A DNA stretch of 64,000 bases from Calcarisporiella thermophila CBS 279.70 (Eukaryota; Fungi; Calcarisporiellomycota), in NCBI RefSeq assembly GCF_041956535.1, contig NW_027192215.1, positions 289,208-353,207 of the forward strand. The letters run 5' to 3'. Positions 1-58,393 of this stretch are shown here, piece after piece. How positions within the stretch are numbered: position 1 is the first letter of the stretch; each line of letters starts with the position of its first letter. The notes under the pieces are model-generated. The model did no database searches and was not told the DNA's origin. It saw only the letters and a list, made by a program, of their open reading frames with translations. A program made the position numbers and the translations under genes.

Positions 1-2348
<2,348 letters not shown>

Positions 2349-20810: not shown

Positions 20811-20879
20811 AGTTAGACAAGTGTAGTTTAGACAAGTTTAGTTTAGACTAGTTTAGACAAGTTTTACGAGCTTGGACAA
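20811..20879 (+). repeat. Short imperfect tandem repeat of GTTTAGACAA-like units
   Basis: agttagacaa gtgtagtttagacaa gtttagtttagacta gtttagacaa ... cttggacaa, about 5 degenerate units. Confidence 0.6.
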
Positions 20880-22942: not shown

Positions 22943-24230
22943 GTTGTAGCTGTTAAAAACCGCAGGAAGTCAGCTAGCATCTTGGAGGAGGCATGAGATT
23001 AGGGAGAGAAAAGCTGCCTCCACAGTCTCAGGAACCAGGTCCAAATTAACAAGTTTAGCGAAATTAACGAAAATTCCGAGTTTCAGTTCTAAACTCGAAA
23101 TTTTCGTTAATGATTCACCCTTGTGTAAAAGTTTCAAACGATTGTGCCTTTTTCAATGCCAAATTACAATTTCTGAGAGCTACCGGTGATATAGTAGAAA
23201 CGATATGTTGACGATATATTGGGACATTGAGATAGTGTACCGACCTTTACATTCGTAGTGTTTACATAGCAATTTCATTTCGTCCACTTATTTAAAATAA
23301 AAGAATAGAGTTTAATAGACTTTTTTGAGCTATCTAAAAATTCAAATGGCAGGCCAGGTTTCTAGTGGGCGAATGCTATTAGAATCCGCGGAAAGTATCA
23401 ATTAAATCAGATTAAAAAGAAACATAAAAAACAAGCAAAAAGAGAACACTCCTGCTTTGATTTGGATAATTTAGAATAAATGTTTTTTCCTAGTGGAGTA
23501 ATGGACAAAAAATTCGCTAATCTAGTATTCTTCGTCGGGCAGTTCGCATTATCAGTATCCATTGATTAGGCGGTTGAATGTGTTTTATAATAAATGAGGA
23601 ATACCTAGGTATTTTTACGTTAAACCAAAAGCAAGGCAACCGTACAATTCTACATAAGTCAGAGGTTAAGCAATTTAAGAAAGCAACATTTGACAGCCGC
23701 TATAAACTTGTTGCCGTGAGTCAGCTGTCAGTAGAAAAATCGAATTAATTACATGTTAAACAATATGGTCATGCGATCGCTTAAACGATCCCTGTAGAAT
23801 TTCTGATCGAAGGCTAAGAAACATCTGCTTCTCAACCACACTCTAAGATTAGATCAAAGTTTGTAGTGATAGTTTATAGTTAAAGAGTTGAGAAAATCTC
23901 CAAATATTTGACGATCCTGTTAACCTCCATCTACTGTCATTAGATAGGAATATGAATGTCACCTAGGAGCTTGCATTACAAGAATATGACATCATTCCTT
24001 CTTGGAGCGATTGATTAATCTAGAAACTATGCCAATAGCTATGATTATTAAGTAATTAAAATAGCTATTGTTACTGAGTAGTTGCTTATTTATCCTACAT
24101 ATTTATCCTCAGTATATTAGAAAGATCTGAACTACTGCAGTGACTTGGGATTTAATATTGGATCCGCACGTTTATTTTTATAATAACTCCACTTGTATGC
24201 TATCTCATCCTAGCTGGAGCTTTTGAGTGG

Positions 24231-24280
24231 CAATATAAAAATCTGTATAATGTTTGATCATTATACAGATTTTTATATTG
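24231..24280. repeat. Perfect 22-bp inverted repeat with 6-nt loop
   Basis: CAATATAAAAATCTGTATAATG-tttgat-CATTATACAGATTTTTATATTG; the arms are exact reverse complements. Confidence 0.9.
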
Positions 24281-24578
24281 TCTTCTCACGTCTGCATCCA
24301 TACGAATATATCATTAAGCCAATACATTAGCGTAGAATACATGTCTCTGTAACTATTAATTGAAGGATCATTCAAAAGCTCATGATAGCATTCTATTATA
24401 GGCAATTAGGTGATCAAACGCGGGTATATGCGTCAATATCTTACAATGAATCCTATTAAAAGATACAGTAAACACGGGTTCTCCTACGTCTCCTATTTTA
24501 CATTTGATATATTTACAAGATTTTACATTATCCAACATGAATATGCCTAATTTCCAGTTTTCCTCCACATCCATCTCC

Positions 24579-25705
24579 CTACCACTGCTCCGTATTCATG
24601 ATATTTTGGTTGCCTTCATGTTCATCAGCAGAAAATAATGAATTGCTGAAGATCTTGTAATGCGAGAGGGCCCGCACGACGGCAGGATTGAGAAGAAACA
24701 CGAGCAAATTTAAGATACCTTGCAATCCAGAAGTTATTGCATCAGCGCGCATTGCTGCCATGACAGAAGGTGAAATCTCCGGATTCATATAGTAAATCCA
24801 GTCGAGAATAATGCCCGCAGGACAACATATCAAGAGCACCATAGGATAGAGCAGTATTCGTAATACGGAATAGGTAAACTGCCGCTCTCTGGCTTGCATG
24901 TCCACCGACGTGGATTCGAAATTCTCTCGGATGATGTGGAGGGATTTGAAAACGCGAAACACTACGGCGAGAATTACAGCAAATGAGTATAATATGGCGG
25001 AAGCCATCCATAAGTCGTAGCAGAAGGTTTCAAGAATAATGGCCTGTGTACGCTCTAGAGATATATAAACTATTTGCTAAAAAGGTAAAAACACATCATT
25101 AGGATTCCAGATGGTAGCTCTATCAGCTGAATCCCTCATTACAAATTCTGGATTCCAATATATATTGCCAACGAATAGGAAGGGCAGAGGGATTATTGAG
25201 CTAACTAGCGCCGCTAAGGGAGAGTAGAACCTCTGAATTATCTTGATATTAACGCGACGACAGAGGAAGGAGAGGTGTAGATCGAGCGCAATTGCGGCAC
25301 TTAGAAATGCAAACCACATTAAAAAAAAGAAGGATGTGTATACTAATAGCCGCGGAAACCAAGGTATCGTGGACACAGTAATGTTCATCAAGGAAGGATT
25401 GACGCGGATCAAAAAGTTGGCCTAGCAATACAGAAGACAAAAGCTTAGTTCTGTAATATTGGAAGATGCCCAGTTGAACCTCTTACGCGGGATAATACAT
25501 CGACTAACCCAATCCAAAGCGAGAGTTTAAGTGATATTGTGTTGGAGATGGTAGGCCGCTTACACCGAAGATAGATAGTTATCGCCATCATTATAAGGGC
25601 ACATATGATGGATATGATATGTAGCCAGCTGTATTGACTCTGTACTGTGTATGAGTAATTATGCGTAGACTCCGAGGTACGGTTTTGATTCTGCTCGATG
25701 TTCAT
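24579..25705 (-). CDS. Compact 7-TM GPCR-like receptor, subfamily A copy 4 (~331 aa)
   Basis: Exons 25705-25487, 25421-25143, 25076-24579 in frame with family motifs. Confidence 0.88.
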
Positions 25706-27366: not shown

Positions 27367-29824
27367 ATGAAATTCGCTATTTCAGATGGTGAATTAGCGA
27401 TTAATTTCGCGTCGGTTGTGTGCGGTACACCCATAATGATACTAGTCGTTTTACTTCGGTACACACAGCCTCAGGCCACGCGTAGCATTTCTTTCAAACT
27501 AAGCTTTTGGATTGGTCTTTCCGATGCTCTCTATCGTAGTTTCTATATTATTTACGTGGCAAGTGACTTCTTAGATGAGGTCATTCCAAACAATCTCTGG
27601 CTGGGCCGAATTATTTTTTGGTCTTTTCATTTCTTTCCTATATGGTTTTCGCTACTCACCGTGAGCATTGCTTTTGACTTGCAACTCTCGGCATTCCATA
27701 ACAAGCTCACCGTACAAAGGTATCAAAAGTGGTATCTCCCTGTATCCACCTTAGTTGCATTCGGCTTATGCTCTCCTGTGCTATTCTATGCGAGCATGGG
27801 ATATGATCCAAAACAAGTAAGCTCTTGATATTAGTTTGCACCTTATAATTACTTACCCGCTAATTCATTTATTTATTGCAGCATAGAGTCATTTATGAGT
27901 GGCCTTATGAAGCCAATCTTATCAGAGTAGTAGTTTTTATTACTGTTATCTCTCTCTGCCTCTTGTATTCCTTCACGATCATTTTCTTCTGCGCGATTAA
28001 GGTTTTCTCTACGGTATTCCGCGTAAGAAGAGAAAAGGACCATCATGGAGAGAAGAATCGCCAAAGAGAACGCCTTTTGATAATGTCTGTTCTTCGACTA
28101 CTAGGATATCCGACTGTATTTATTTTATACATGCCTGCTGAGTGTATAATGCATTATATAATTATCACTAAGACTCGCGACACACCTTTCTGAGACTTCA
28201 CAGGAAAAGCAAAGGCAATCTTGACTGGAATGATCGGTATATTCAACTTCATCATATTTTTATTTAATCCGCCTTTCTCAAATGCAGTCAGCAAATTTTT
28301 TAAGAAAACACAATGTCCACAATCCAAATCGCGAAGCATCTCATATGCATCCACTAAAATGGATGGAGGAGACAACGCGCCGCAATTTGAATCTTTTATA
28401 TGGAAAAATCCAATTAACAAGCCAGCTCTGGTAGAAGAGCAGCCTGCAACTCTTTTCAAAAAGGTTAGGTTTGTGCAGAGTTGTCCGAGAATGAAAGAGG
28501 AGTTGTTACCAAAAACCGGTGCTCAGTTGAAGGGAAATACTGCAACAAGTGCATTTGCTCTGCATCAAGTTGCATTTTCTCCATCAGATATACCAGAATC
28601 GCGTACAAGTGAAACTGGATACAGATATATAATGGGAAGGTGTTTTTGTGCAATTACAGGTTAATATTCTCATTCGCTATTGCTAAGAGCACTTAATCTC
28701 TAATATTATCTTCATAGGAATCCACTACATTCTACCAAATGATGAGGAGAGATAGAGAGGCTAATCAACCAACATTACTTCTTTCGGTACATTATTTTAT
28801 ACTTGCGAAAATCTTGAAGCATTTGTTTAAAATTCCAAACTATTAGATCATTCTTCTCCAATCGCAACTTCCAATCTCCGGTTAAAGAAAGCTTGCTGGA
28901 TGGTGCAATAGTGCTAGATGTAGGGTAAATATTGCTTATTACGACGTATATTAAACATTTTTTTCTCAACTACCTTTTGTTGTGGTTAGGTGTGGACCAG
29001 GTATATGGACCATGGAGATGGCCACAGAATACCCGAGAAGCCAGTTTCATGGCATCGACATATGCGATATGTTCCCGCAGCAAATCAGACCAGCCAACTG
29101 CCATTTTCAGATTGCGGATATCCTCAAGAGGCTACCATTTGAGGACGCGCAGTTTGACTTCATATACATTCGATGTATGAGTCTAGCAGTATTCCAGAGT
29201 GAATGGCCGGATGTGATCTCTGAGATATTCCGAATCATAAAGCCTGGAGGTTATTTGGAATTTGTCGAAGCGGGTAAGAAGAGACCGGAAGATGATTCTT
29301 TACACATAATGGCTTACATATATCACTGTAGATTATGCGATTCAATGTGACGGAAAAGCACTCCGAAAAATCACGGAAGGGAGTCAGTATATGAAATTTT
29401 GCCACAGCTTGTTTGAATATTACTAATAAGTTCTTCTCTCATGATTTTTATCGTAGTTTACAATACATTACGTGCACGAGACACTCACCCATCATGGGCG
29501 TGTAGAATCGGCGAATATTTGAGGTTCATTGGTACTGAAGATGTAAATTCCTTCTCCCATCCAATTACAGTCAGTAGTCAATCTGGTGAAGATGTGAGTT
29601 GCGGGAAAGATTATTGGATGCACTTTCTTCGTGCAATTAAGCCGCATCTTGCTCAGGTGATGTACATCAGCCCTGAGGAATATGACGAGCTGCAGCAATG
29701 CGTTTATCGAGAATTAAGTGCTGATAATATCCGCATTGATGTAGTGAGTACATATGGGTGGAAGCCATTTAAGATAATCCAGGTACGGGAGGATGACGAG
29801 CAGATAGATACGTTTTCAGGATAA
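27367..29824 (+). pseudogene. GPCR-methyltransferase fusion, pseudogenised copy
   Basis: Same 7-exon layout as 33912 and 40943. It has TGA at 28191-28193 where paralogues encode Gly (PFGD) and a 1-nt deletion near 28750 (GATGAGGAG-AGATA versus DEEEI) that shifts the frame. Downstream MTase exons remain recognisable (VLDVG/CGPGIW..HGIDI..FDFIYIR). Confidence 0.85.
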
Positions 29825-31769: not shown

Positions 31770-32998
31770 ATGAACTTTGCCATTACAGATGGAGAATTGG
31801 CGATTAATTTCGCGTCAGTATTTTGTGGTGCACTCATAATGATACTCGTCGTTTTCCTTCGGTACACACAGCCTCAGGCCACGCGTAGCATTTCTTTCAA
31901 ACTAAGCTTTTGGATTGGTCTTTCCGATGCTCTCTACCGCAGCTTCTATATTATATACGTGGCAAATGATTTTGTCGATGCTGTTATGCCAAACAATCTC
32001 TGGCTGGGTCGAATTATTTTTTGGTCTTTTCATTTCTTTCCTATATGGTTTTCACTACTCACCGTGAGCATTGCTTTTGACTTGCAACTCTCCACATTCC
32101 AAAACAAACTCACCGTACAAAGGTATCAAAAGTGGTATCTCCCTGTATCCACCTTAGTTGCATTCGGACTATGCTCCCCAACGTTATTCTATGGAGGTAT
32201 GGGATATGATCCAAAGCAGGTAAGTTTTATCTTTTTATAATAGTTTGCAATTTTCGGCAATTTACTCGCTATTTTATATATTTATTGCAGCATAGAGGTA
32301 TCCTTGATTGGCCTTATGAAGCCAATCTTATCAGAGTAGTAGTTTTTATTACTGTTATCTCTCTCTGCCTCTTGTATTCCTTCACGATCATTTTCTTCTG
32401 CGCGATTAAGGTTTTCTCTATGGTATTCCGCGTAAGAAGGGAAAAGGACCTCCACGGAGAGAAGAATCGTCTAAGAGAGCGCCTTATGATAATGTCTGTT
32501 CTACGACTACTAGGATATCCGGCTGTACTTATTTTATGCATGCCTGCTGAGTGTATAATGCATTATTTGATAATTACCAACACTCGCAATACATCTTTCG
32601 GAGACTCCACAGGAAAAGCGAAGGCAATTCTGACCGGAATGATCGGCATCCTCAATCTGATCATATTTTTATTCAACCCAGCTTTCTCAGGAGCCCTTAG
32701 TAATTTCAAAATATTCAAAGATGTTGAATATATGAAATATTGGAATCGGACCGCTGCCTACACAGATTATGCCAAGAAGTATCCGCATTTGCAACAAATT
32801 GCTGAAAATGCACAGGCAGATGCCAAAGCGAGTGCAAATATAAACAAATTGGACACTGGGAAATCGGATGAGCCAGAGATTTCTCGAGTGCAAGAACAAA
32901 AGATCCTACCAAATCAACACTTACTTGACGCAAAAAGAAAAGAAGATCGTATTCTTATACCCTTTTCGAGCGGGATTAGCGACTTTTCTACTCGTTAA
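31770..32998 (+). CDS. Subfamily-B 7-TM GPCR-like receptor without methyltransferase domain
   Basis: Two exons (31770-32219, 32291-32998). 7TM region nearly identical to the 27367 copy, but after FLFNP it continues AFSGALSNFKIFK into an unrelated tail and stops; no MTase exons downstream. Confidence 0.85.
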
Positions 32999-33752: not shown

Positions 33753-33911
33753 ATAACTTTGTAATGGCAATATATAAGAGATCAAATGCATCTGCTTGCG
33801 TTGACAAGCACAAGATCTCCTATCACTTTTACTCCACTAGTAAGCAAAAATATTTTACAGGTTAATTTAAAAATATAGTCCGAGTAAACTCTGATTTGCA
33901 GCAGCTAAAAG

Positions 33912-36381
33912 ATGAAATTTGCAATATCGAAAGGAGAGCTTGCCATTAATTTTGCCTCGATCGTATGTGCTACACTCATTATGGGACTTGTAGTTTTCCT
34001 TCGGTACACTCAACCACAGGCTACACGCAGTATTTCTTTCCGACTTAGTTTCTGGATTGGACTTGCTGATGCTCTCTACAGAAGTTTTTATATCATATAT
34101 GTGGCAAGCGAATTTATCGACTCTGTCATACCCACCAATATCTGGCTCGGTCGGATTACTGCTTGGTCATTTTATTTTTTTCCTATGTGGTTCTCTTTGC
34201 TTACAATGAGTATTGCATTTGATCTGCAACTTTCCGTATTTCACAAACACCTCAAAATACAGAGTTTTCAAAAGTGGTATTTAGCATTTGCAACTTCAGT
34301 CGCCTTCGGCTTATCCTCACCTGTGCTATTCTATGGGTCCATGACATACGATCCGAACCTGGTCAGCTTACTTCTGATATCACTCCGCTGTTTCGAAATA
34401 TTAACTTCATATAATTTCAAATAGAAAAGAGTAATTTACGAGTGGCCATATGAAGCCAATCTTGCCAGAGTAGCGGTATTCATCGCTGTCGTCTCTATCT
34501 GCATATTGTATTCCTTTTCGATCATTTTTGCATTTGTGCTTAAGGTTTTCATCATGGTATATCGCTCAAGGAGAGAAAAAGACCAACAAAGAGAGCGAGA
34601 CCGAATCAGAGAACGCCTTGTTATGATGTCTGTGCTGCGACTCCTAGGATACCCAGTAGTACTCATCTTGTGTTTGCCAGCTGAATGTATAATGCAATAT
34701 TTGATCTTTACCAATTCTCGCAACACACCATTTGGCGATACCACAGGAAGAGTGAAGGCAATCCTGACTGGAATGATCGGTATCTTCAACCTGATCATAT
34801 TTTTCTTTAACCCTTCTTTTTCAAGTGCCATCAGCGAACTTTTCAAGAAATCAACATGTCCGCAGTCTAAATCGCGAAGCATCTCATATGCATCTACTAA
34901 GTTGGATGGAGGAGACACCATTTTGCCTCATTTTGAATCCTGGATATGGAAAAATTCAAATAGAAATTCGACACCATCAGATGCAGTACTGTCTGCAGCT
35001 CGCTTCAAAAAAGTTAAATTTGCACAGGATTTGCGAGAGATAAAAGGCCAGATAGAACAAGTTACTAGCGCCCAATTGCAGCGAAATTCTACCTCAGCAA
35101 GCACAAATGCTCAGTGTCGACTAGTGTTTTCACCATCAGAGGTACCAGGATCGCACATAAATGACAATGGATACAATTGGGTAATGAGAAGGCGATTCTG
35201 TGCTGACTCAGGTTTTTATACCTATTCACATCGTCTTAGAAAATGCAATCACTGACTTGTACATCTCACAGAGATTCACTATATTTTACCAAACGATGAG
35301 GAGGAGATGAATCGGTTAATCAGTCAGCACTATTTCTTCCGGTATAGTATTTTGTAATAGTGCATATCATGAAGCATTTACTTGATATGCTTCACTATTA
35401 GATCTCTATTTTCCAATCGCAATTTCCTCTCTCCGGTTCAGGATGTCCTGAGAGATGGAGCAATGGTTCTGGATATAGGGTAAGTGTGCATTTTTAGGTG
35501 TACTTTAGTTATTTCTCCTCAGCATTCCTCTGATGTGGAAAGGTGTGGGCCAGGTACTTGGACTATGGAAATGGCTACAGAATACCCGAGAAGCCAGTTT
35601 CATGGCATCGACATATGTGATATGTTCCCACAACAAATCAAACCAGTTAACTGCCACTTTCAGATTGCGAACATACTAAAGAAGCTTTCATTTGATGATG
35701 CATCGTTTGACTTTATATACATCCGATGTATGAGCTTAGGAGTATTCCAGAGCGAATGGGTGGAGGTGATTGCAGACGTGCTCCGAATCATAAAACCTGG
35801 AGGATACATAGAATTTGTCGAAGCAGGTATTAATGCCCTAGATAATTGCAAATCGAATGAAAACCTTACTAATATATCACTTCGATTAATGTAGATTATG
35901 CGATCAAATGTGACGGTAAAGCACTCCGAAAAATCACGGATGGAAGTAAGTATATAGGTTTCCTTTTGGCTCAGCTTATTTGAATGATACTAAGGGTTTC
36001 TTAATTTTCATCACAGTTTACAACACATTACGTGCACGAGACATTCACCCGTCATGGACGCGTAGAATTGGCGAATACCTGAAATACATTGGTGTTGAAG
36101 ATGTAAATGCTTTGTCCCTGCAATTTCCAGTTAGTAGGCTATCAAGAGAAGATGGGGGCAGTGGAGTGGAATATTGGATGCAATTCCTGAGTGCAATGAG
36201 GCCACATCTTGCTCAAGTGATGTATATTAGTCCCGAAGAATACGACGATCTACAACAAAACGTCTATCAGGAATTGAGTGCAGAGCGCTTTAACATTGAT
36301 GTAGTTTGTACATATGGTCGAAAACCATTTAATATAACCCATGAAGTGGAGGATAGGCAAGTCGAAGTGCATCATAAATGA
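33912..36381 (+). CDS. GPCR-SAM-dependent methyltransferase fusion protein, intact copy 1 (694 aa)
   Basis: Exons 33912-34361, 34425-35211, 35272-35341, 35402-35479, 35543-35826, 35895-35945, 36017-36381 total 2085 nt in one open frame, all introns GT-AG. 7TM, then linker, then RRRFCADSEIHYILPNDEEEMNRLISQH..VLDIGCGPGTW..FHGIDI..FDFIYIR..KPGGYIEFVE. Confidence 0.88.
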
Positions 36382-37927: not shown

Positions 37928-39097
37928 TCATAAAAACTTTAAGTTGTATCCGTCTGAGTAACAAGTATTGGGGGTGTTCACGCTTCCGCTGACCCTTCTA
38001 ACTCGAGCTGTAGACAGCACATTATCTGTTAGAGCCGACTTGCTCTTTAAATTATTCCATATCCATGGTTTTGTCTGAAGTATGGTATCTCCTTCATCCA
38101 ACCTGGTGGATGCATATGAGATACTTCGCGATTTTGACTGCGAATATGTTGTTTTCTTTAAAAACTCGCTGATAGCATTTGAAAAAGACGGATTAAACAA
38201 AAATATGATGAAATTGAAGACGCCTAACATTCCAGTCAAGATTGCCTTCACTTTCCCAGTAGCATTGCCCAAAGGTGTATTACGAGTGATGGTGAAATTT
38301 ACATAATGAATTATGCACTCGGCTGGCATACACAATATGAGCACTACTGGATATCCTAGTAGTCGCAGCACGGACATTATCATAAGCCGTTCTCTGAGGC
38401 GGTTCTTTTCTCCGTGGATATCTTTTTCTTTCTTCACGCGAAATACCATACTAAAAACCTTAATCACGCAAGCAAAAATGATCGTGAAGGAGTATAAAAC
38501 ACATCCAGAGATTACGCCAATGAACACCACCACTCTGGCAAGATTGGCTTCATATGGCCATTCATACGTGACTCTTTGCTATTATGTTAATAGTGTTGCT
38601 GGAATTAATATACAGAATATTAAATTTTATATCTAAGGAAAACTCGCATGTTTCGAATCGTATATCATAGTCGCATAGAAAAGAATAGGGGACGACAAAC
38701 CGAATGAGACCGTTGTTGCAAATAAAAGGTACCATTTCTGGTACTTTTGTATAGTGATTTTATGGTGAAAGACAGAAAGTTGCAGGTCAAAAGCAATGCT
38801 CACTGTAAGCAGCGAGAACCACATTGGGAAAAAGTAAAATGACCATACAAGAATTCGACCTAGCCAAATGTTATTAGGAATGACTGCATCCAGAAAATCT
38901 AGCTCTGTGTACATGATATAAAAACTCCGGTACAGAACATCAGAGAGACCAATCCAGAAGCTGAGTCTAAAGGAAACACTACGTGTGGCCTGAGGCTGTG
39001 TGAAGCGAAGAAAAGCCACAAGGATCATTATGAGAGTAGCGCAAACAATCGAGGCAAAGTTAATGGCTAGTTCACCATCGGGAATGTCGAATTTCAT
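37928..39097 (-). CDS. Inverted subfamily-B GPCR-like receptor, truncated within the fusion linker
   Basis: Two exons (about 39097-38648 and 38578-37928). Full 7TM plus linker QSKSRSISYASTRLD..WIWN..ARVRRV, then unrelated sequence and a stop; no MTase follows. Confidence 0.8.
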
Positions 39098-39739: not shown

Positions 39740-40010
39740 AATTTGTTTATTATTACAATTAAGTGCTGAAATTATAAAATAAAATTAAAAAGTAAACATT
39801 ATACATTGAAGGTGATTAATAAAATTGTTAGTTATATAACATTCACATATGTTCTACTTTGAACCCAACCGGCATATCCTATTCTATCCCGATTATACTC
39901 TATCTGCTCATTGCCTTCCCTTACCAGGTTTATCTTAAATGGTTTCCGGCCATAGGTACTCACTACATCAATGCGGATACTCTCAGTACTTTATTCTCAA
40001 TAAATATAAA
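39740..40010 (-). pseudogene. Inverted fragment: 3' end of methyltransferase last exon plus 3' flank
   Basis: Minus strand reads STESIRIDVVSTYGRKPFKINLVREGNEQIE, matching SADNIRIDVVSTYGWKPFKIIQVREDDEQID at 29717-29810; the downstream non-coding sequence resembles 29830-29960. Confidence 0.85.
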
Positions 40011-40019
40011 TTTTTCCAC

Positions 40020-40331
40020 CAAATTACTGATGGAAGTCGGTATATGACCTTTTCCACCACTTGTTTGAATGTTACCAAGAGGGTCTTATTTTTCATCACA
40101 GTTCACAACACATTACATGCACGTGACATTAACCCATCATGGACGTGTAGAATTGGCGAATATCTGAGGTTCATCGGTGCTGAAGATGTAAATTCTCTCT
40201 CCCTGACATTTCCGTTTAATGGGCTATCTGGAGAAGATGAGAAGCTTGGAATGGATTATTGGATGCAATTTCTGAGTGCAATGAGGCCGCATCTTACTCA
40301 AGTGATGTATATCCGTCCCGAAGAATATGAC
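40020..40331 (+). pseudogene. Methyltransferase fragment (end of exon 6, intron, first part of exon 7)
   Basis: ITDG, intron, then HNTLHARDINPSWTCRIGEYLRFIG..YWMQFLSAMRPHLTQVMYIRPEEYD; homology then ends abruptly. Confidence 0.88.
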
Positions 40332-40769: not shown

Positions 40770-40942
40770 GAGAACTCAATAATGGCGAAATAAAAGTAGA
40801 GAAATGCGCAGATGGATGCAGGTAAGCCCACACACCCTAACTCTCCTTCATTTTATTAGTAAGACTATCCAATAATACTAATTAAAAAAAATATTGTAAT
40901 TAATACATTTTAAAATTTTCGATAATTTACAGGAATCTGGAG

Positions 40943-43406
40943 ATGAGGTTCGATATATCAGATGGGGAACTAGCGATCAATTTCGCGTCAATAATATGTG
41001 CTACATTTATTATGGTTCTTGTCATATTTCTTCAATATACTCAGCCCCAGGCCACACGCAGTGTCTCTTTTAGACTCAGTTTTTGGATTGGTCTCGCGGA
41101 TGCTCTCTACCGAAGTTCTTACATCATATATACCGAACTAGATTTCTTAGATGCAATCATGCCAAACCACATCTGGTTAGGTCGAGTTATTTTATGGTCT
41201 TTTCATTTCTTTCCAATGTGGTTCTCACTACTTACAGTGAGCATTGCCTTCGACCTGCAATTTTCCGTATTCCACCAGCACATACCCATACAGAGATTTC
41301 AAAGATGGTATCTCTTATTTGCAACCTTGGTCGCATTTGGCCTATCTTCTCCAGTTTTATTCTATGCAAGTATGAGATATGACGCGAATACTGTGAGTCT
41401 ACCTCACATATCAACTAATGCTCTCCAGACATGTTCCCACTAACCTTGTTCTCTATGGATTAGAAAAGAGTCATTTATGAATGGTCTTATGAGGCCAATC
41501 TTATCAGAGTAGTGGTGTTCATTATTGTTGTGTCCCTCTGCGTATTATACTCCTTCTCCATCATATTTGCCTGCGTGTTAAAAGTTTTTTTATTGATAAT
41601 TCGCGAGAGACGAGAAAAAAATCTCCACGGAGACAAGAATCGTGGTAGGGAATGGCTTGTAATGATGTCAGCTCTTCGGCTCCTTGGATATCCTCTGGTA
41701 CTCATAATATGTTTGCCACCTGAATGCATAATGCATTATATCATCATTTCCAAGACTCGCAATACAGTATTTGGTGATTTCACGGGGAGAGCGAAAGCGA
41801 TCTTAACAGGAATTCAGGGAATTCTCAATCTAATCATCTTTTTGTTCAACCCAACTTTTACAAGTGCACTGAAGGAGTTCTTCATTAACAAACCGGTGGG
41901 ATTTCCGTCAAAATCACAAAGTGTCTCCTACGCCTCGACAAGGATGAATGGGGTAGACACGATACCGCATTTTGGATCCTGGATATGGAAGCAATCTGCT
42001 AGCAAATTGGATCCCATATGTGAAAATATGTCTCCTACTTCTAAAAGGGTTAAATTTGCAAATGTACCAGAGATGAAGAAAGGAAAGATGTCAAATATTG
42101 GAGATGCATTGCAATCCAACCCCTCAATAACAGTCACATCAGATCAGAAACAGTTTGTATTTTCACCAACAGATATACCGGAATCCCAACCTAATGACCG
42201 AAACAAATGGATAATGGGACGACGGTTTTGTGCCGATTTGGGTATCTTTCATTTCATAGTGTTGCTGTGAGCATGTGATCACTGACTTTTACTATGCAGG
42301 GATACATTACATCTTGCCAAATGACGAGGAAGAGATAGACCGATTGATTAGCCAGCACTTTTTCTTTCGGTATGAATTTCATACGCATATATTAACTGAA
42401 GCATCTGCTTTAAGATTTTCCATTATTAGATCACTATTCTCCAATCGCAATTTTCTCTCTCCAGTTCAAGATATCCTGAGAGATGGAGCAATGGTTTTGG
42501 ATTTAGGGTAAGTGTGCATATACAGATGCTTTTAGATATTCTTTCTCAGCGTTTCCTATCGTTGCTAGGTGTGGACCTGGCACATGGATCATGGAGATGG
42601 CTACCGAATTCCCGAGAAGCCAGTTTCACGGCATCGACATATGTGACTTGTTCCCTCAGCAAATCAGACCGGACAATTGTCATTTCCAAGTTGCGAACAT
42701 CCTTAAGGGACTGCCGTTTGAAAACGCGCTGTTTGATTTTATATACATCCGATGCGTGAGTCTAGCAGTGTTCCAGAGCGAATGGGCTGGTGTGATTACA
42801 GAGATACTCCGAGTCCTGAAACCTGGAGGCTATTTAGAATTTGTAGAAGCGGGTAAGAGACTACCAAGAGCTAACGCGTCGCTCACAAAACTGACATATT
42901 TCACCTAACTTCTGTAGATTATGCGATTCAGTGTGAGGGGAAATCTCTCCAGAAGATTGCAGATGGAAGTCAGTTTAAAAACTTTTACCGTAGCTTATTT
43001 GAATGAGACTAAGAGGCAATTATTATTCATCATAGTTTACAACTCATTACGTGCACGAGATATTCATCCATCGTGGACACGTAGAATAGGCGAATATCTA
43101 AGGTCGATTAGCGTTGAAGATATAAGTTCTCTATCTCAGCCCTTTCTCGCTAGCATTTTCTCTGGAAAAGATGGGGAGCGTGGGGTGGTTTACTGGATGC
43201 AGTTTCTAAGTGCATTGAAGCCGCATCTTGCTCAAGTGATGTACATCAGCTCTGAAGAGTACGACGAACTACAACAATGTATCTGTCGGGAACTGAGCAC
43301 AGAGCGTATCCAAATTGATGTAGTATGTACATACGGCCGAAAATCAGGTTACATTGACCAGGCAGAGGAGAATGAAGATCAAATAGAAATATACTCGGAT
43401 GGATAA
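40943..43406 (+). CDS. GPCR-SAM-dependent methyltransferase fusion protein, intact copy 2 (693 aa)
   Basis: Exons 40943-41392, 41464-42241, 42300-42369, 42430-42507, 42569-42852, 42918-42968, 43036-43406 total 2082 nt in one frame. Exons 1 and 3-6 (450, 70, 78, 284, 51 nt) have the same sizes as copy 1. Motifs GRRFCADLGIHYILPNDEEEIDRLISQH, VLDLGCGPGTW, HGIDI, LPFENALFDFIYIR, RVLKPGGYLEFVE. Confidence 0.9.
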
Positions 43407-46767: not shown

Positions 46768-47939
46768 ATGGATGATGTACAGCAAGAGTATTTTGCGTTA
46801 AATTTAGCATCCATAGTGTGTGCATTTTCGATCATGGCCATGGTCGTATGGCTAAGATGGACACAGGTAGACATTGCCAGCACTATTTCATTCAGGCTGT
46901 CATTTTGGATAGGTTTTGTGGATGTGCTCTATCGTGTATGTATAGCCTCTTATTGATCCCCTCTTCTGCCTTCAATCGGTTCCGGGGCACTTACCATGCA
47001 TCTCCATTCGTTTGACTCAGGGCATATTTCTCTTTCGCACCAACTACTCTCTCATGGACACTCTGCTCCCCTCCCAGCCCCTGATCGTGCGTCTTCTTCT
47101 GGGATCAATCTATATCTTCCCACTTTGGTTTGCATTCCTTAATGTGACCATAGCCCTCGACTTGCACCTCTCCTTTCTCTGTCGACAATCCAATATGAAG
47201 AGGTTCCAACGTTGGTATCTTCCAGCGTCTTTCTTCGCAGCAATAGTCCTCGGAATCCCGATTATGCTAGTTGGGACACCTTACTGGGACAAGGAGCTTG
47301 TGAGTGAAGTGGCTAAAAATGTTCCCCCACCCACATCTTAGAGCTAATGTTTCGTTGTGCGTGTAATAGCACTCTGTCATGTTCGACTGGAACTTCTCTA
47401 CGTCCATCGCAATCGAGCTTCTTTGTTCAGATATATGGATGGCATTTGCGATTGTGTATGCCTTCTTCATTATTCTCGCGGTGCTCTTTCAAATCCTAAA
47501 GGATCTCAAGGCTATAAAAGTACGCACCCAAACTATTCAGTACGAATTTCGAGAGAAGGAGGGGCAACTTGTCTGCTCAGTTCTGCGAATCTTACTCTAT
47601 CCATGCGTGCTAGTCATCTGCCAGCCTGCGACCATTGTGGTTAGCTGGCTTTTCGTCACCGACACCGCGTTTACTAAGCTCGGTTCGGCAATAAGACGCA
47701 TAGAGGCGATTACGAATGGGTTGCAAGGAATTCTTAATCTCATTGTCTTTCTCATCAATCCTGCAGTTGCACGAGCACTCTGTCGTGTACCATGGATCAA
47801 AAGATTTTTAAATCGCATATTTCCAAGCAATAACCAGATCCACATGGTTGAAAACGGTGCGGCGATTGACATCATGGTTGCTCGTCTGGACAATCAAGGT
47901 GCCATGAATTCCAGCTCAAATATACCCCCTAGTGCATAA
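46768..47939 (+). CDS. Compact 7-TM GPCR-like receptor, subfamily A copy 5 (~338 aa)
   Basis: Exons 46768-46935, 47021-47299, 47370-47939 in frame. Motifs ASTISFRLSFWIGFVD, IALDLHLSFL, LRILLYP, GLQGILNLIVFLINP. Confidence 0.88.
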
Positions 47940-51584: not shown

Positions 51585-52209
51585 ATGGCAGAAAACGACC
51601 CGCCTCGCTCTGCCGATGCATCCACATCGGGTCAGAACAAACCCTCCTCGTTGACCGATGCTGTCAAAGTAACTACCGATTGAGATTGGCGCTGCACCTG
51701 TTCCACTGACGCTAATGCATTACACTTTAATGGATAGACCATTTCCTTGTCTGATTTCCAAAACATTGGTCGAATGCCGTGTGCACGCTCCAGTCTTCTC
51801 TATGGAATTGGCAGTGGCTTCGGCGTCGGTGGTATCCACTACCTCCTTCGAGGTAGTACTGAATTCTATCCGCTTTTCGTGCATTCTAAGGCTGGTTGCT
51901 AATGGGTTTTTTTGGGTGGAGGATAGGCAATCTAAGAAGGGCATGCAACTGGAGCGTGGGTGCTTTCTGTCTTGTGTCGATTGCTTCCTGGTAACTGTCC
52001 TTTTCTCCCAGCTGACTCGAGAGGGGACTGGAGAGACGGATGCTAACGGGTTTGGATGGGATAGGGAGCTCTGCCAGAGCAAGCGTAGAGCGGCCGCGCA
52101 GCGGATACAGACCATCATCCAGCAGGCCGAAGAGACACGGCGGAGGAAGCTCGAGAGGAAGGCCGCTGTAGAGCAAGCACAGGACAAGCCGGAGGTAGAC
52201 GGCGTCTAG
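51585..52209 (+). CDS. COX20: Cytochrome c oxidase assembly factor Cox20
   Basis: Four exons give DFQNIGRMPCARSSLLYGIGSGFGVGG..RRACNWSVGAFCLVSIASWELCQSKR (Cox20 PCxRxS, NW and WExC pattern). Confidence 0.88.
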
Positions 52210-52996
52210 TTTGCCGGGTGGGGGAAGAAAATTTGGAGCCGTCTTGCCGAATTCTTGGAGGAGGAGAGTGACTGTTAGACTCAATGTGATGATAAAAATT
52301 TTCTGTTATTTTTTCTCTTTTCTTCGTTGTTGCATTGCACCTTCACCCCCTTCATTGTTGCTGTTTTTGTCTCATTGGCAACTATATCAGAGTCCTATTT
52401 ATTTATCCTCGATATCCCACCCTACGTCTGCATTGCTGGTAAAAATCGTCTTTTGCGTAGCGCTGGCTATAGACAAGAGAAGCTCCGTGGCCGATATTAA
52501 CCCTGATCTCCCCATTGCAGCCACGATTACGTCTCTTTTCCTTCTCCACACGAACTGACGTAGTCCTGTATATAAGGGGTTGCAAGAATCTAGCCATTCC
52601 ATCTAGCATTGCCAATAGGCTATTTATCATTCCAGCTTCCGCCCTTTTTTATTGGATCACCACGCCCTTGCGCAATCAAGTATTCAAGGTAGGCTATCTC
52701 TTCCCTGATCTATTACGTGTACTTTGGGGGTGTAGGCTAATGCCATGATCTCTAGTTTTGGATTCAACCAGAATCTCCGAATTGATTGGTGGGGGGGAAT
52801 TCTCCGGGGATTACACAGCCGGTAGGGCATCGCCTCGCTATCTCTCACATTTGCTGGGCATTAACCCTCCTCCCTTTTGCCATTAGACCCCCCAACCAGC
52901 ACACAAGAGCCACTCACATCGTCAAGACCACCCACCCACAACCTCCCCTCTGACAACGAGGACGAAAGCGCGCACCCTCGCAAGCGCGCACGCACC

Positions 52997-55331
52997 ATGT
53001 CTAAATCTCTTCCCTCCGCCCTTAACGGCACTCCCTCCCTCTCAACGGCCACCCCCTCCAAATCGCTAGCCTCCACGCCGACGCCGACATCCGCAGGCCT
53101 GCTGACGAAGCTGGGGCGTGCTGGCGAGCTCTTCAAGACGGAGGAAATGGTGAGGCTAATGGTCCAGGCCCTGCGGGATCTGGGGCTCAACCAGTCCGCC
53201 ACCCAGTTGGAGGCGGAGAGTGGGGTCAGCCTTGAAACGCCGGCTGTCTCCACGTTCAAGCGCTTTGTCCTCTCCGGAGACTGGGACGACGTGGAGACCG
53301 CTGTGCTTGAGTTTGTCGACTCGACCGATGCGCCGCAAGTCCAGCTCCTCATACGACGGCAAAAGTACCTCGAGCTGCTGGAACGGCGGCAGCTGAAGTC
53401 AGCGCTCGGCGTGCTGCAAGGGGAGCTGACCCCGTTGTTGAGCCTAAACGTGGAGGCCAAGGAGGGCATCGAAAAGGGGAGCAACAGGGGCTTGGGGCAG
53501 GAGACTTTGCACACGCTGGCGAGCTATATGATGTGCGGCAGTGGCGACGAGTTGAGGCGACGGGCGGCATGGGATGGAGCGAAGGGGAAATCACGAAAAG
53601 CATTACTTGTCGAGTTGCAGAGTAGGTGTTTCAGCATCCTTTGTTCTTTGGTTTTGTCACCTTGCCTCCCGTCTGCTTACTTGATTTATCGACTCCTTTC
53701 CAACTTACACACACCCACCCCTTCAATGGTCATCCCATTATTTTCTCGTCCCGTCTCTTGTTCCATGGCCAATTCCATTGACAGATTTTAGAGTGCTCCA
53801 CTAACCCATATGCTCTCCCTCCCTTAGAATACATCTCCCCGACGATCATGGTGCCCGACCGGCGGTTGGAGCAACTGCTGCTGCAGGCAACCGAGCACCA
53901 GCGGGCCCAGTGTTTGTACCATAATGCAGGGGATGAAGAGGAGGACGAGGACGAGGAGGAAGAAGTCTCCTTGTTAACCGACCACAAATGCGACAAGTAA
54001 GCTGATGGGCGATGGGTCCTCTTGACGGCTCACTGTGATTAACCCCCTCCCCCATCTCCTCTAACTGGCAGGGCTAGATTCCCGTGCACCACTCTGCACG
54101 TGCTAGAGCACCACACCGACGAGGTCTGGTACATAGCCTTCTCCCACGACGGCCGGCAGCTCGCGTCTGCCTCCAAGGACCAGAGCATCGTCATTTGGAG
54201 CGTCGACGACGGATACCTCTTGCGGGAGTTGATAGGGCACACCCACGAGGTGTCCTTTGTGGCCTGGTCGCCCAACGACGAGATGATTCTGAGCTGCGCC
54301 AACGACGGGGTCCGGTTATGGAAGCTCCCGGTGAGTAGGCTTTTCTCTCTCCCCTCGCCCCTTCATTTTCAGCAGCCCAATTCTATTACTGGACATGCTG
54401 CGCCACGTTTCCTAAGTATCTATAACCTAACCCTTTCCTCCATCCCCCTCTACCCTCCCCCCTACAGGAGGCGGAGTGCATCCGGACCATTCAACGGCAC
54501 ACCGATCAGGTCACCTCGTGCGCGTGGCTGCCCGACGGCCAGCGCTTTGTCACCGCGGGCATGGACAAGAACCTCTATCTGTGGAGTATCGACGGCACCA
54601 TGCTGCACCGGTGGACCACGGGGCGCATCATCTCGCTGGCCATGGACCCGCGGGGAGAATTCGTGGTGGGGGTGTGCTACGATCGGCGGATTAGGCGATA
54701 TAACCTGATTGACCGGGTGGAGGAAAAGTAAGCTTTCTCTCTCTCTCTCTCTTTACTCCACCGACGCGACGAGTCTAACCTGTATTGCCCTGTGGCTTGC
54801 AGCTATATCCAGGAGAGCGAGCCAATCACGTCTCTGAGCTTGGCGGCGGATGGGCGCCACGTGCTGGTGAATCTGAAGAGTTCGGTGAGTAGCCGCCCGC
54901 CGGGTCCCTCCCAGCTCTGGGCGGGCCCGCGGACGATGAGAAGGAGTCGCCTCCCGTGCGGTACTAATGTGTGTTTGTGTTCTGCGCAGGAGCTCCACCT
55001 CTGGGACATCCAGGACCGGCTTCTCCTCCGCACCTACACGGGGCACCGCCAGGGCGAGTTTGAGATCCGGTCGTGCTTTGGCGGCCACTCGCAGCGCATC
55101 ATTGCGTCCGGGTCCGAGGACGGGGCGGTGTACTTGTGGAGCCGGGAGCGCGGAGCGCTCATGGAGGTGCTGGTGGGGCACGGCGGGGTGGTCAACGGGG
55201 TGGCGTGGAATCCGCGCGATGCGCGGATGTTTGCGAGCGCGTCGGACGACAAGAGCGTGCGGGTGTGGGTGGGCGAGCGCCAGCGGCCCGAGGGCAAGGG
55301 CAAGGGCAAGCGGAAGGGCGGCCCTGTGTGA
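52997..55331 (+). CDS. GID7: WDR26/Gid7-like LisH-CTLH-WD40 subunit of the GID/CTLH ligase
   Basis: EEMVRLMVQALRDLG..LEAESG (LisH), RQKYLELLE..AL.VLQGELTPL (CTLH), MVPDRRLEQLL.QA, HTDEVWYIAFSHDG.LASASKD, YTGHRQGEFEIRSCFGG, WNP..MFASASDD. True start may be upstream (possible acceptor near 52886). Confidence 0.9.
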
Positions 55332-57067
55332 ACCGGCCAATCCCATGCAGTCTCGTTACCACGCCCCCTCCCCCCCCGCGCTCTACTCTCTACTGCGCCG
55401 TGCGGTTCTCCTACTCCCTGTGCATTGTCTCGGTTCTCTTTGTTGCTATCTCCATCGGGGGACGGCTTTGGTTTTCCTGGTTATTCTTTTTCCGTGTCTT
55501 TTGTCTCCGTTTCTCGCCATGTGACTGGTTTTCTCATTCCCTGCTTGTTTCCGCCCTTCTTCCACATCTCAATCCATTACAATACAATATACTAAACAGG
55601 AAGCTGAGATTTTTTGGGTTTTTCCAAATTTTCCCGGCGCCTGCCATTGGGGTTTTCTCGCGTGGATAAAAATCGTTCCATGTGGCCCAGTCGCACTTTA
55701 TCGCTTCTGGCCCAGCGTCGGCCTTTGAAAGTGGGATTCTCCATTACTAACCGCCTCGGCGTGTGGCAACGCGCGAGTCAGGCGGATTTGGGTTAGGCGC
55801 GGGAGGCGGTGACGTTCGCGGGGAGCCATCCCCGGCGGAGGGGCGGCGGGGGCGGCGGGGGCGGCGGCTAGGAGGCCCCCGGCGGGGTAGGTTAGGTTAG
55901 CTCGGGCGATCTGGCGAGAAAAGGGGGGAAGATGGGCGGAGGAGGCGATTGGGCGGGGGGAAGGGTTTGTTCCACGGGATTGGTTGGTGGGAAAGATTTG
56001 TTTTTGAGTTGCGTTTGGGCTGAACAATCCAAGAGGAGGTAGGTTGTTCAGCAGTGCGACTGTGCTGGGGGGGGGGGGGTGGGGTCCGCCGCGGCCAGAG
56101 GGGCGGTAGGGGATCCGGCCGTGCGATGATCTGGTTTCTCCGGCTTGGTGCGCAATATAATTTTTTTTTTTTCCACCGGCACGGAGCCGGCAGGGTGGGC
56201 GGGCGGGCTTGGCCCAAGATTGGTGAATTCTAACCTCGTCTTGTGTAAACGTGGACAGATTGGCTTTTTTTAATTTCTGATTTCCTGAGGGAACAATGCG
56301 GGCGGCGGGCATGAATCACGGCGGCGCCGGCGCGGGCTGCGGCATGCGCATCGGCGGGGGGCAGATCGCAGGCGAGGCCCAGGAGCGCGGGAATGTCTCG
56401 TTTGTCAGGCGGTGCTTATGCGATCGGAGGGCGATTGGATGCGCGCAGAATTGCAGCATTGAATTGGACAAAAGAAGAAGGGGTGAAACGCGGTGATTTG
56501 CATTTTTTTTTTCCCTCTTCCAATGCCCCTGACATGACCACCCGGAGCCCACACACAAATCACCGCCAGCCGCATCAGCCCGGATCGAACCGCCAACAGG
56601 CGGGCTTCTTTTCCGGCTGCGGGGCTCTGGCCCAGGCCGCGAAGGGAAAGCATAAGCAAAATTCCAGTGTCCGCATCGCGCATTTTTCTTTTTAGAGTTC
56701 TCAGACGGGCTGGCCCAAGGACTGGTTGCGGACGAGTCGGCCGGGTGGTGTGTTGGTTTTACACGCACGCCCGCCCCCTCTTTTCTCATCGCCCTCTTGA
56801 ACTCAAATTGGTTTGCCTCCCTCAACTCTACTTTTGTTGGCCTCTTCTGCCCACGGCCTCATCCGCATCCGCCCTCTCTCCCGCTCTCTCTCTCTCCCTC
56901 CCGCGTCTGGAAAATGACCAGGCCCCTCCCGCGTGCACTTGCTCTTGCCTCTTGCTGAATTGCGCGCTAATTGCCTCCTCGCCTGCTCGCCATCTACCCG
57001 TCCCCATCCCCCGCATCCCTCCTCTCTCTCCCAATCCATCCGCTGCCGCTCATCCCCGCGCCTGACA

Positions 57068-58393
57068 ATGACGGCTCATCCGGCCTCGTCGGCCGCCCCA
57101 TGGTACCCCCTCGCCATGATGGACATCCTCCGCCCCCCACGCGTCATCCCCGCCTCCGCACAGCCCGCGCTCTCCCTCGCACCCGCCGCGCCCGCCCCCC
57201 CGCCCGCCGCCCAGCCGCTCATATACCTCCCGCAGCCCTCCACGCTCCTCCCGCATCCATCGCATCTGCCCCTCCCGCTCCCCAAGACCGTGTACGCCGC
57301 GCCGGCGTCGTGCGTCCCCGCCTACCGCCTGCCGCCGCTCGTCTTCCACCGCCCCATCGCCTTCCCGCCGCTGCGGCAGCTGCAGCCAATGATGGAGGTG
57401 CATCCGTCGCCGCCCGCTTCGCCGCCGCGCACCGTGCCTGAGCCGCGGCAGGAGGAATGCCTGGCGGACATGACGGCCCGCATGGCATGCTTCTTGTGGT
57501 ACGGCCGGCCCAGCCCTCCCCCCGCATGCTCCCTGGCCGGCGGGAGAGGCGGCGGAGCGGACGGAGACAGTCGCATGCTGTTCGCCCGCTTTTGCCGCCG
57601 GCTCTTCGAGGCCACGCGGGTCACGTCCGCCAACTGCCTCCTCGCCCTCCTCTACATCTACCGATACCGACGCGCCCAGCCCAACGTGCGCGGCTCGCCT
57701 GGCTGCGAGTACCGCCTCTTGACCGTCGCGCTGCTGCTGGCGAACAAATTCCTCGACGACAGCACCTACACCGCGCGGACGTGGGCGGACGTGAGCGGGA
57801 TCCCCGTGCGCGAGGTGGTGGTGATGGAGGTGGAGTTCCTGGCCGCTCTCGACTACAAGCTCTGGGTCGACCCCCACGAGTTTGCCGGCTGGAAGGAGCG
57901 CGTGGAGCAGTGGACCGGCATGGGCGATGGGCTCCTGGTGTCCCTGGCGTCCAACTTCGGGTCGCCGGCGCTGCGCACCCCCCTGAGGCTGGTTGCGGTG
58001 CCGTGCGAGGACTCGCCGCTGATGACGCCGGGGTACGGCTCGCCGACCCTCAACCTATTGCACCAGCAGCAGCACCAGCACATTTGCTACCATAAGCAGC
58101 ATCAGCAACCCCAACCGCTCCAGCACCCGCAGCCTCTTCAGCGCCAGCAGCCATACCACTACCATCAAATCACGCCCGTCACAAGCCCCACCCGCCGGAG
58201 GCGGAGGCGCCAGCAACAACAGCAGCACTACCAGCAGCTTTTGTCCGCCCAGCAGCAGCAGCAGATCCAGGTGGTGCCCGAGTGGACCGAGGACCGCGCG
58301 TGCGGTCTGAAACGGCGTAGTGATGAGGATATGGAGGAGCGAACGAAGCGGCTGGCAACGGAACGGGCATGGTATGGGGTTATCCATGTCTGA
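57068..58393 (+). CDS. Pho80/Pcl-family (Clg1-like) cyclin with Pro-rich N-terminus and Gln-rich C-terminus
   Basis: Cyclin box FCRRLFEATRVT..LLALLYIYR..EYRLLTVALLLANKFLDDSTYTARTWADVSGIP..MEVEFLAALDY; single exon; start codon choice uncertain. Confidence 0.88.
   Translation: MTAHPASSAAPWYPLAMMDILRPPRVIPASAQPALSLAPAAPAPPPAAQPLIYLPQPSTLLPHPSHLPLPLPKTVYAAPASCVPAYRLPPLVFHRPIAFPPLRQLQPMMEVHPSPPASPPRTVPEPRQEECLADMTARMACFLWYGRPSPPPACSLAGGRGGGADGDSRMLFARFCRRLFEATRVTSANCLLALLYIYRYRRAQPNVRGSPGCEYRLLTVALLLANKFLDDSTYTARTWADVSGIPVREVVVMEVEFLAALDYKLWVDPHEFAGWKERVEQWTGMGDGLLVSLASNFGSPALRTPLRLVAVPCEDSPLMTPGYGSPTLNLLHQQQHQHICYHKQHQQPQPLQHPQPLQRQQPYHYHQITPVTSPTRRRRRRQQQQQHYQQLLSAQQQQQIQVVPEWTEDRACGLKRRSDEDMEERTKRLATERAWYGVIHV

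Follow-up and report, generated by a model that had tools for sequence, protein, structure and literature searches.

We analysed a 64,000-nucleotide stretch of contig NW_027192215.1 of Calcarisporiella thermophila CBS 279.70 (positions 289,208 to 353,207; C25:289208-353207 in our numbering), hereafter the window, and focused on a gene at 40943-43406 on its forward strand, copy B, whose reading frame runs from a seven-transmembrane (7TM) domain through a tail into a methyltransferase (MTase) domain. Together with a diverged neighbour, copy A, and paralogues elsewhere in the genome, copy B probably represents a fusion family of at least six intact genes, each predicted to encode one polypeptide of ~690-760 residues with an N-terminal 7TM domain of G-protein-coupled receptor (GPCR) fold, a tail of ~125 residues (measured from an NP motif to a GRRF motif) and a C-terminal class I MTase. 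An earlier sequence-only reading of the window had proposed that the fusion is kept by selection, and our results support this proposal, since both domains are constrained and the frame has stayed open across a diverged linker.

Copy B begins with an ATG at 40943, ends with a TAA at 43404-43406 and consists of seven exons of 450/778/70/78/284/51/371 nt, separated by six introns of 71/58/60/61/65/67 nt, all of which are GT-AG. When the spliced frame was rebuilt from the window, it comprised 693 codons plus the TAA with no internal stop. Copy A has the same seven-exon structure, with exons of 450/787/70/78/284/51/365 nt, GT-AG borders at all introns and exon phases equal to those of copy B. The rebuilt gene models thereby bear out what had been read from the sequence, namely exon phases common to both copies, equal sizes of exons 1 and 3-6 (450/70/78/284/51 nt) and a frame that is open through both domains and the linker in copy B and, over 694 codons, in copy A. 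The in-frame 9-nt linker difference reported there is also real and is the net outcome of five single-codon insertions or deletions in the exon 2 tail; the 6-nt length difference between the two copies in exon 7 was absent from that reading. The parts of the two genes, with transmembrane helices abbreviated as TM1-TM7 and S-adenosylmethionine as SAM, are as follows:

40943..41392 (+): copy B exon 1, 450 nt, phase 0; opens with the start codon and covers TM1-TM4 and the beginning of extracellular loop 2
41464..41898 (+): copy B exon 2, first 145 codons; encodes TM5-TM7, including the NP motif of TM7, and also helix 8
41899..42144 (+): copy B exon 2, codons 146-227; Ser/Thr-rich, predicted cytoplasmic tail or linker, poorly conserved in sequence and conserved in length
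42145..42241 (+): copy B exon 2, final 32 codons and one further nucleotide; start of the MTase-homologous region, with the GRRF motif
42300..42369 (+): copy B exon 3, 70 nt; helix at the N-terminus of the MTase domain, with the LPND...RL..QH region
42430..42507 (+): copy B exon 4, 78 nt; runs into SAM-binding motif I and is 92 % identical to its copy A counterpart in amino acids
42569..42852 (+): copy B exon 5, 284 nt; Rossmann core with the GCGPG motif I, the acidic GID motif and motifs II and III
42918..42968 (+): copy B exon 6, 51 nt
43036..43406 (+): copy B exon 7, 371 nt with the TAA counted; encodes the lid or cap at the C-terminal end of the MTase, and an acidic tail
33912..36381 (+): copy A, used for comparison; an intact fusion gene of 694 codons in seven exons arranged as in copy B

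TM5-7, a tail of ~120 residues and the first MTase-homologous residues all lie in the single exon 2, and the fusion is therefore independent of any splice prediction. Exon 2 encodes residues 1-170 of P0001, the public protein model of copy B, and in BLASTP searches of this protein homology to the free-standing Halteromyces MTase P0029 set in at residue 163 (GRRF) and homology to P0027, a free-standing MTase of the same species, at residue 145. Downstream of TM7, exon 2 continues for another 114-117 codons in which the frame stays open; among 20,000 shuffles, such an open frame arose by chance in 10 and 5 cases (2.5-5 per 10,000). At least eight copies in the genome are free of stops from TM7 through to the MTase. 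The TM7 NP motif and GRRF lie 123-132 residues apart in six paralogues that are 38-62 % identical overall, while the Ser/Thr-rich tail itself is mostly unconserved with a few conserved islands.

Sequence comparison of copies A and B revealed deep and uneven divergence. Amino-acid identity in exons 1-7 is 75/59/86/92/78/69/64 %, and third codon positions differ at 20-68 % of sites, compared to 4.5-25 % at positions 1 and 2. The introns are 64 % identical (shuffled introns, 51 %), the 300-nt flanks 58 % and 51 %, and the linker 46 % at the amino-acid level, confirming the visible divergence of introns, third codon positions and linker that had been noted before. At synonymous sites the two copies are separated by a dS of ~1-2, which is near saturation, and we therefore used uncorrected proportions (pN/pS), which are conservative, in addition to nonsynonymous-to-synonymous rate ratios (dN/dS, omega) estimated with the NG86, YN00 and maximum-likelihood methods. 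The approximate ratios for the three parts of the protein are:

7TM domain: dN/dS 0.08-0.095; uncorrected pN/pS 0.24 (95 % bootstrap 0.19-0.31)
Tail or linker: dN/dS 0.31-0.34, or 0.41 with slightly different bounds; pN/pS 0.59 (95 % bootstrap 0.41-0.84)
MTase domain: dN/dS 0.11-0.24; uncorrected pN/pS 0.24 (95 % bootstrap 0.19-0.30)

The per-domain comparison suggested in the sequence-only reading thus gives values that are not near 1 for either the 7TM or the MTase part, and the linker, too, lies below 1. Bootstraps in which pN/pS reached 1 numbered 0 of 1000 for the 7TM domain, 0 of 1000 for the MTase and 2 of 1000 for the tail, and for exon 1 alone dN/dS between the copies is 0.046. At the sequence level, these patterns indicate purifying selection on both domains, weaker selection on the tether, and selection on the continuity of the frame. 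Retention of the fusion is not unconditional: several copies have decayed into pseudogenes, and the MTase has been lost from several receptors that nest among the fused genes. In a comparison of one such pseudogene, copy C, with copy A, omega was not clearly relaxed, and the inactivation of copy C is recent relative to the divergence.

For the 7TM domain, no Pfam family reached threshold in searches with all copy B exons and 23 family members (the best sub-threshold match was 7tm_1, E 7e-4, in two members), and a sequence-profile search of the PDB with this domain returned no match. An AlphaFold2 (AF2) model of the paralogue P0002 (P0002:1-300), built on a 23-row family alignment, reached a mean predicted local distance difference test score (pLDDT) of 88.8 and a predicted TM-score (pTM) of 0.88, and contains seven long helices, a beta-hairpin in extracellular loop 2 and helix 8. 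P0002 is 66 % identical to copy B over exon 1 and 59 % over the 7TM part of exon 2 (alignment A2). When the model was compared with the PDB using Foldseek, the top 50 matches were all class A GPCRs, with TM-scores of 0.55-0.72, and at least 459 matches had E<=1e-3; an ESM Atlas structure search of the 7TM domain likewise gave TM-scores of 0.74-0.81 to GPCR clusters. A proline in TM6 and the NP motif in TM7 are conserved across the family, the extracellular N-terminus is short, and the TM5-TM6 loop contains eight Lys and Arg residues. Such a basic loop fits a topology with the N-terminus outside and the C-terminus inside, which would place the MTase in the cytosol. We regard the 7TM domain as a Pfam orphan for which structural modelling predicts a GPCR fold with confidence.

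The C-terminal half was recognised by sequence profiles directly. Exon 5 alone scored 50.3 bits against Methyltransf_25 (cut-off 27) and 42.7 against Methyltransf_11 (cut-off 21.2), with Methyltransf_31 also passing, and P0001 scored 59.5 against Methyltransf_25 and 46.0 against Methyltransf_23, both above cut-off; in an NCBIfam search of the MTase, only generic class I MTase entries matched, below their cut-offs. Cofactor positions LD.GCG, GID, FD and PGG are invariant or at least 90 % conserved among 27 sequences (alignment A3, copy B as reference). The AF2 model of the MTase region of copy B itself (P0001:160-454) has a pLDDT of 91.4 and matched solved MTase structures in Foldseek with E-values down to 5e-16. 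These features identify the C-terminal domain as a class I SAM-dependent MTase with intact cofactor motifs. The closest solved folds are those of MTases acting on small molecules or peptide termini (3mgg, LahSB, phosphoethanolamine N-MTases, OxaG/RoqN, RebM, JHAMT, trans-aconitate MTase and GtmA), and on the strength of the model the substrate is more probably a small molecule, the head group of a lipid or the terminus of a peptide than nucleic acid.

Free-standing homologues of 280-370 residues were found in Mucorales/Mucoromycota, Glomeromycotina, Mortierellomycotina (Mortierella) and one chytrid, and ascomycete MTases matched the enzyme half weakly (E 1e-14 to 1e-15); judged from these matches, free-standing relatives appear to be common in early-diverging fungi. 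A closer kinship to LaeA-type MTases (LaeA, LlmF, VipC or VapB) is a lead suggested by family-level signals, namely the Methyltransf_23 score and the weak ascomycete matches. The free-standing Methyltransf_23/25 proteins, such as P0029 of Halteromyces and P0031 of Diversispora, are 32-43 % identical to the fused enzyme over the whole MTase domain, share its N-terminal GRR...LPND...RL..QH region and resemble it with ESM Atlas TM-scores of 0.80-0.90. In contrast to the fused enzyme, they are soluble proteins of 280-370 residues without a 7TM domain, and all are uncharacterised.

Exact look-ups assigned the window proteins to C. thermophila (Mucoromycota), with VTP21DRAFT locus tags. The public model of copy B, VTP21DRAFT_6135 (P0001), has 454 residues, is identical to residues 240-693 of our rebuilt model and starts at a methionine inside TM6. 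That of copy A, VTP21DRAFT_6134 (P0021), has 528 residues, starts at rebuilt residue 144 and includes an extra 69-nt 'intron' inside TM5. Introns 2-6 are the same in the public and rebuilt models of both copies, which hence agree on the link from tail to MTase. We conclude that the public models of A and B are N-terminally truncated and that the 69-nt TM5 intron of copy A is spurious. A fusion locus on contig C32 (L008, C32:565-4341) is publicly modelled as a 260-residue MTase only (P0026). In both copies, a pyrimidine-rich stretch ending in CAG lies 10-12 nt upstream of the ATG (40925-40942 and 33893-33911) and looks like the acceptor of an intron in the 5'-untranslated region. The genome paper on CBS 279.70 does not mention GPCRs and refers to MTases only with regard to the loss of O-methyltransferases in thermophiles (PMC11393059).

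An exon-wise search of the whole 28.2-Mb, 116-contig assembly returned 46 matches to exon 2 and 38 to exon 5. Exon-by-exon tblastn placed exons 1 to 7 in collinear order at 12 loci: three each on contigs C25 and C10, two on C4, and one each on C1, C32, C17 and C15. Public annotation contains full-length fusions of 674-764 residues at four loci (P0002, P0022 at L012, P0009 and P0011), and with copies A and B the demonstrably intact fusions number at least six. At two further loci (C32 and C10:875k), all matched exons are free of stops, and four loci (copy C, C4:785k, C1:721k and C10:851k) contain stops or frameshifts. The exon structure is shared beyond the window, with P0002 publicly annotated with a 450-nt exon 1, as in copy B, and one junction exon, and the deeply diverged P0009 having equivalents of exon 5 and of the 51-nt exon 6. 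A match to exon 3 is present in every fused paralogue except the broken copy C, the third fusion copy of the window:

27367..29818 (+): copy C; exon 2 is interrupted by an in-frame TGA (28191-28193) and exon 3 by a frameshift near 28750

Public annotation of this pseudogene keeps the MTase part only (P0023, 337 residues). An intronless 731-residue fusion at L016 (C10:858000-867999) was ruled out, because its 'open frames' are runs of N; these lie at ~1-2750 and ~6250-7750 of the locus, interrupt another fusion locus and produce spurious six-frame 'open frames' of 731 and 1351 residues. L016 was left out of the 12 clear loci.

In the MTase tree, all fused domains fell into one clade with support of 100/100, separate from the species' own free-standing P0027 and P0028 and from thirteen enzymes of other fungi. 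Within it, copies A, B and C group with the C4 pair, followed by C1, C32 and C10:875k, then by the other C10 group, and then by C15 and C17. This branching order mirrors that of the 7TM tree (the placement of L009 in the 7TM tree is not valid, and its position rests on the MTase tree), and the congruence of the two trees argues for a single fusion event. Two 'non-fused' rows lie inside the fused MTase clade, namely P0026, the truncated public model of the C32 fusion, and P0025, a 445-residue MTase on contig C9 without a 7TM domain. An approximately unbiased (AU) test rejected a tree in which all fused rows form one clade (p 0.002); since this rejection is due to P0026 and P0025 (L018a), it is not evidence for multiple origins. 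P0025 (L018, C9:266000-273000, at ~1980-3030 on the minus strand) branches next to the C17 copy, and no 7TM exons matched upstream of it; P0025 may thus derive from a fusion whose receptor half disappeared. Another MTase, more distantly related, is located 2 kb from it.

In the 7TM tree, enzyme-free receptors nest among the fused ones such that at least seven changes of label are needed, and the simplest reading of the tree is repeated secondary loss of the MTase. One enzyme-free receptor adjacent to copy A (31770-32902, +) can be aligned with the tail of the fusions as far as exon 2 codon 229 and therefore looks like a fusion that lost its MTase. Enzyme-free receptors also adjoin fused genes at L010 (C4:778k) and L011 (C1:136k), and P0003 and P0057, both of 385 residues, belong to this group. 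The order fusion/unfused/fusion recurs on C4 (VTP21DRAFT_8596-8598), suggesting segmental duplication. Taken together, the trees and gene structures indicate that the fusion arose once, by the joining of a lineage-specific receptor to a member of the free-standing MTase family common in early-diverging fungi, is old relative to the diversification of the family, was inherited as a unit, was kept in many copies and was lost or broken in others. The claim of the sequence-only reading that two diverged intact copies speak against an assembly chimera or chance adjacency is upheld on broader grounds: the junction lies in one exon, 12 collinear loci are spread over several contigs, the trees are congruent, and four paralogues of 674-764 residues were annotated independently.

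The fusion was not found outside C. thermophila in a library of 1.84 billion representative proteins, with the family profile or in a metagenome scan. The exon 2 search of that library gave 20 matches, and those looked up came from this genome except one from Dimargaris; the family profile added two unfused Dimargaris proteins at 25 % identity, and the metagenome scan with a profile of the junction exon detected no relative. The three proteins of Dimargaris cristalligena (P0020, P0059 and P0060, named 'G-protein coupled receptors family 1 profile domain-containing') are unfused 7TM proteins; outside C. thermophila no other relatives of the receptor domain were found, and the three match it at 25-27 % identity with profile E-values of 1e-44 to 1e-66. 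They differ in lacking an MTase, in belonging to another phylum (Zoopagomycota) and in forming a long branch in the 7TM tree.

The surroundings of the fusion genes form a receptor-gene array of ~30 kb. Between copies A and B lie an inverted fragment (38003-39097, -) with exon 1 and most of exon 2 of another copy, and stray pieces of exon 7 (39886-39990, -, and 40104-40331, +), which by their sequence appear to be the remains of rearranged further copies. Five more distant unfused 7TM family genes, including P0007, P0017 and P0008, flank the cluster (16430-25624, -, and 46774-47837, +). The G+C content is 0.33-0.40 in the receptor cluster, 0.41-0.55 in the first 16 kb of the window and 0.54-0.65 at 52001-58000.

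Proteins of comparable layout are the GPCR-bigrams of oomycetes and other protists, which have been described as GPCR-PIPK, GPCR-INPP, GPCR-AC, GPCR-PDE and GPCR-TKL types (PMC6033456, PMC5784254). Like these, the C. thermophila proteins carry a GPCR domain and a catalytic domain in one frame, with the N-terminal 7TM domain followed by a C-terminal, predicted cytosolic enzyme; both groups form multi-copy families beside canonical free-standing enzymes. The C. thermophila family differs in its SAM-dependent MTase partner, which is not of the PIPK, INPP, AC, PDE, TKL or aspartic protease type, in its fungal host and in its different, lineage-specific receptor family. No MTase bigram type is described in PMC6033456 and PMC12716839, in which the word 'methyltransferase' occurs 0 times, and we found no other architecture combining a GPCR with an MTase described in the literature. 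The layout of receptor and enzyme is hence known from GPCR-bigrams, while the combination of receptor and MTase was not found described and appears to be new.

We tentatively propose, while giving it somewhat less than an even chance in this form, that the fusion acts as a tethered receptor-enzyme of the GPCR-bigram type. With the N-terminus outside and the C-terminus inside, the MTase would be held on a leash at the cytosolic face of the membrane, where a ligand-induced rearrangement of TM5-7 and helix 8 would alter the activity or reach of the tethered enzyme, and the MTase would methylate a membrane-proximal substrate. Bacterial chemoreceptors and CheR offer a parallel in which an MTase is kept beside a transmembrane receptor by a flexible C-terminal tether, although the proteins are unrelated and from another domain of life, the tether is a non-covalently bound pentapeptide and the substrate, the receptor glutamates, is known. 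A bolder version, in which the GPCR half directly controls the attached enzyme and thereby, with no G protein involved, turns an extracellular cue into methylation on the inner side of the membrane, is speculative and somewhat unlikely; the neighbouring enzyme-free receptors might then serve as partners or substrates of such a ligand-gated MTase.

Several points qualify the reading of copy B and its paralogues as a family of tethered receptor-enzymes. No docking between MTase and receptor was predicted (the complex prediction score of 0.17 is evidence neither way, and the Atlas model of the whole protein has a pTM of 0.48), the 7TM fold was modelled on the paralogue P0002 and not on copy B, and the omega values are approximate because dS is near saturation. 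In addition, shorter products may exist, given the N-truncated public models of A and B, and the intact, constrained 7TM domains of the unfused receptors nested among the fusions imply that the receptor half works or persists without the enzyme.

The 7TM domain might alternatively be a mere membrane anchor that positions the MTase and no longer senses anything. A precedent is NHMT (AN4663), the seven-transmembrane N-terminal histidine methyltransferase of lytic polysaccharide monooxygenases (LPMOs) in Pezizomycotina (10.1101/2022.10.03.510680), which shows that a 7TM segment and an MTase can act as an anchored enzyme. NHMT is likewise fungal and likewise joins a 7TM segment at its N-terminus to a SAM-dependent MTase domain at its C-terminus. 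Its 7TM part has no structural or sequence similarity to GPCRs, however, and its MTase is spermidine-synthase/METTL13-like; it resides in the endoplasmic reticulum, methylates secreted proteins, is mostly single-copy and is restricted to Pezizomycotina (10.1101/2022.10.03.510680). The C. thermophila protein, in contrast, has a 7TM domain of GPCR fold and a Methyltransf_25/23 enzyme, is multi-copy and comes from a mucoromycote, and the published description of NHMT sets the two apart as convergent architectures, not homologues. Anchoring would be in line with the very short N-terminus and with the fact that no ligand, G-protein coupling or domain docking could be shown. Yet the 7TM domain is the most constrained part of the protein (dN/dS 0.08-0.095) and has kept GPCR hallmarks, that is, the loop 2 hairpin, the TM6 proline, the TM7 NP motif and helix 8, and many enzyme-free members of the family are themselves conserved, which a pure anchor does not explain. 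We therefore consider a pure anchor unlikely.

It is distinctly improbable, in our view, that the receptor merely holds the MTase until a signal cleaves the tail and the freed enzyme does its work in another place, such as the nucleus. The fusion would then be the covalent counterpart of VapA-VipC-VapB of Aspergillus nidulans, in which class I MTases sit on the cytosolic side of the plasma membrane, held by a membrane-associated partner tied to signal reception, VapA tethering two LaeA-like MTases and freeing them on signal (PMC4299510). Both systems would represent membrane-tethered fungal class I MTases in signalling, but in VapA-VipC-VapB a FYVE zinc-finger protein holds the enzymes non-covalently until their release to the nucleus, whereas in C. 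thermophila the tether is covalent and to a 7TM receptor. Cleavage is among the models proposed for GPCR-bigrams (PMC6033456), and a long, Ser/Thr-rich, mostly unconserved tail with few conserved islands would suit it. On the other hand, the closest solved folds are small-molecule MTases, and neither a cleavage site, a nuclear localisation signal nor kinship to VipC/VapB lends support, although none of these was specifically looked for.

Two separate products might also arise from each locus, by an internal start, a retained stop-containing intron 2 or an internal promoter, so that the long frame would be of little consequence. The public models of A and B that start inside the 7TM region, the MTase-only model of the C32 paralogue (P0026) and the existence of enzyme-free receptors could all be read in this way. 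We rate this as very improbable: at least eight copies lack a stop from TM7 to the MTase despite saturated synonymous divergence, where chance would give ~2.5-5 in 10,000 per copy, a single exon holds both TM5-7 and the beginning of the MTase, tether length is conserved, four paralogues are annotated at full length, and a start in TM6 would leave a nonsensical membrane stub of 1.5 helices. Finally, although the copies are tandem, 7 kb apart and in a cluster with rearranged fragments, it is hardly credible that they are intact without selection, through youth, gene conversion or an assembly or adjacency artefact, because a dS of 1-2 and introns close to random identity mark them as old and not homogenised, pN was below pS in every bootstrap for both domains, sister copies gained stops and frameshifts over comparable divergence, and the same architecture occurs on several contigs.

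At the level of gene models, our results correct the public annotation, in which copies A and B are listed as fragments of 528 and 454 residues and the C32 copy as an MTase alone. More broadly, receptor-enzyme fusions are natural experiments on the activities that a 7TM receptor can drive directly, and an MTase partner would add a new output chemistry to a bigram set of lipid kinases and phosphatases, cyclases, phosphodiesterases and protein kinases. To our knowledge, methyl transfer is not known for any eukaryotic receptor-enzyme, and a ligand-gated MTase, if true, would amount to one-component GPCR signalling via methyl transfer. The 28-Mb genome of this culturable thermophile brings its own internal controls, with intact fusions, decayed copies, derived enzyme-free receptors and free-standing MTases side by side, and owing to their thermophilic origin the proteins may suit structural work on the coupling of receptor and enzyme at full length.

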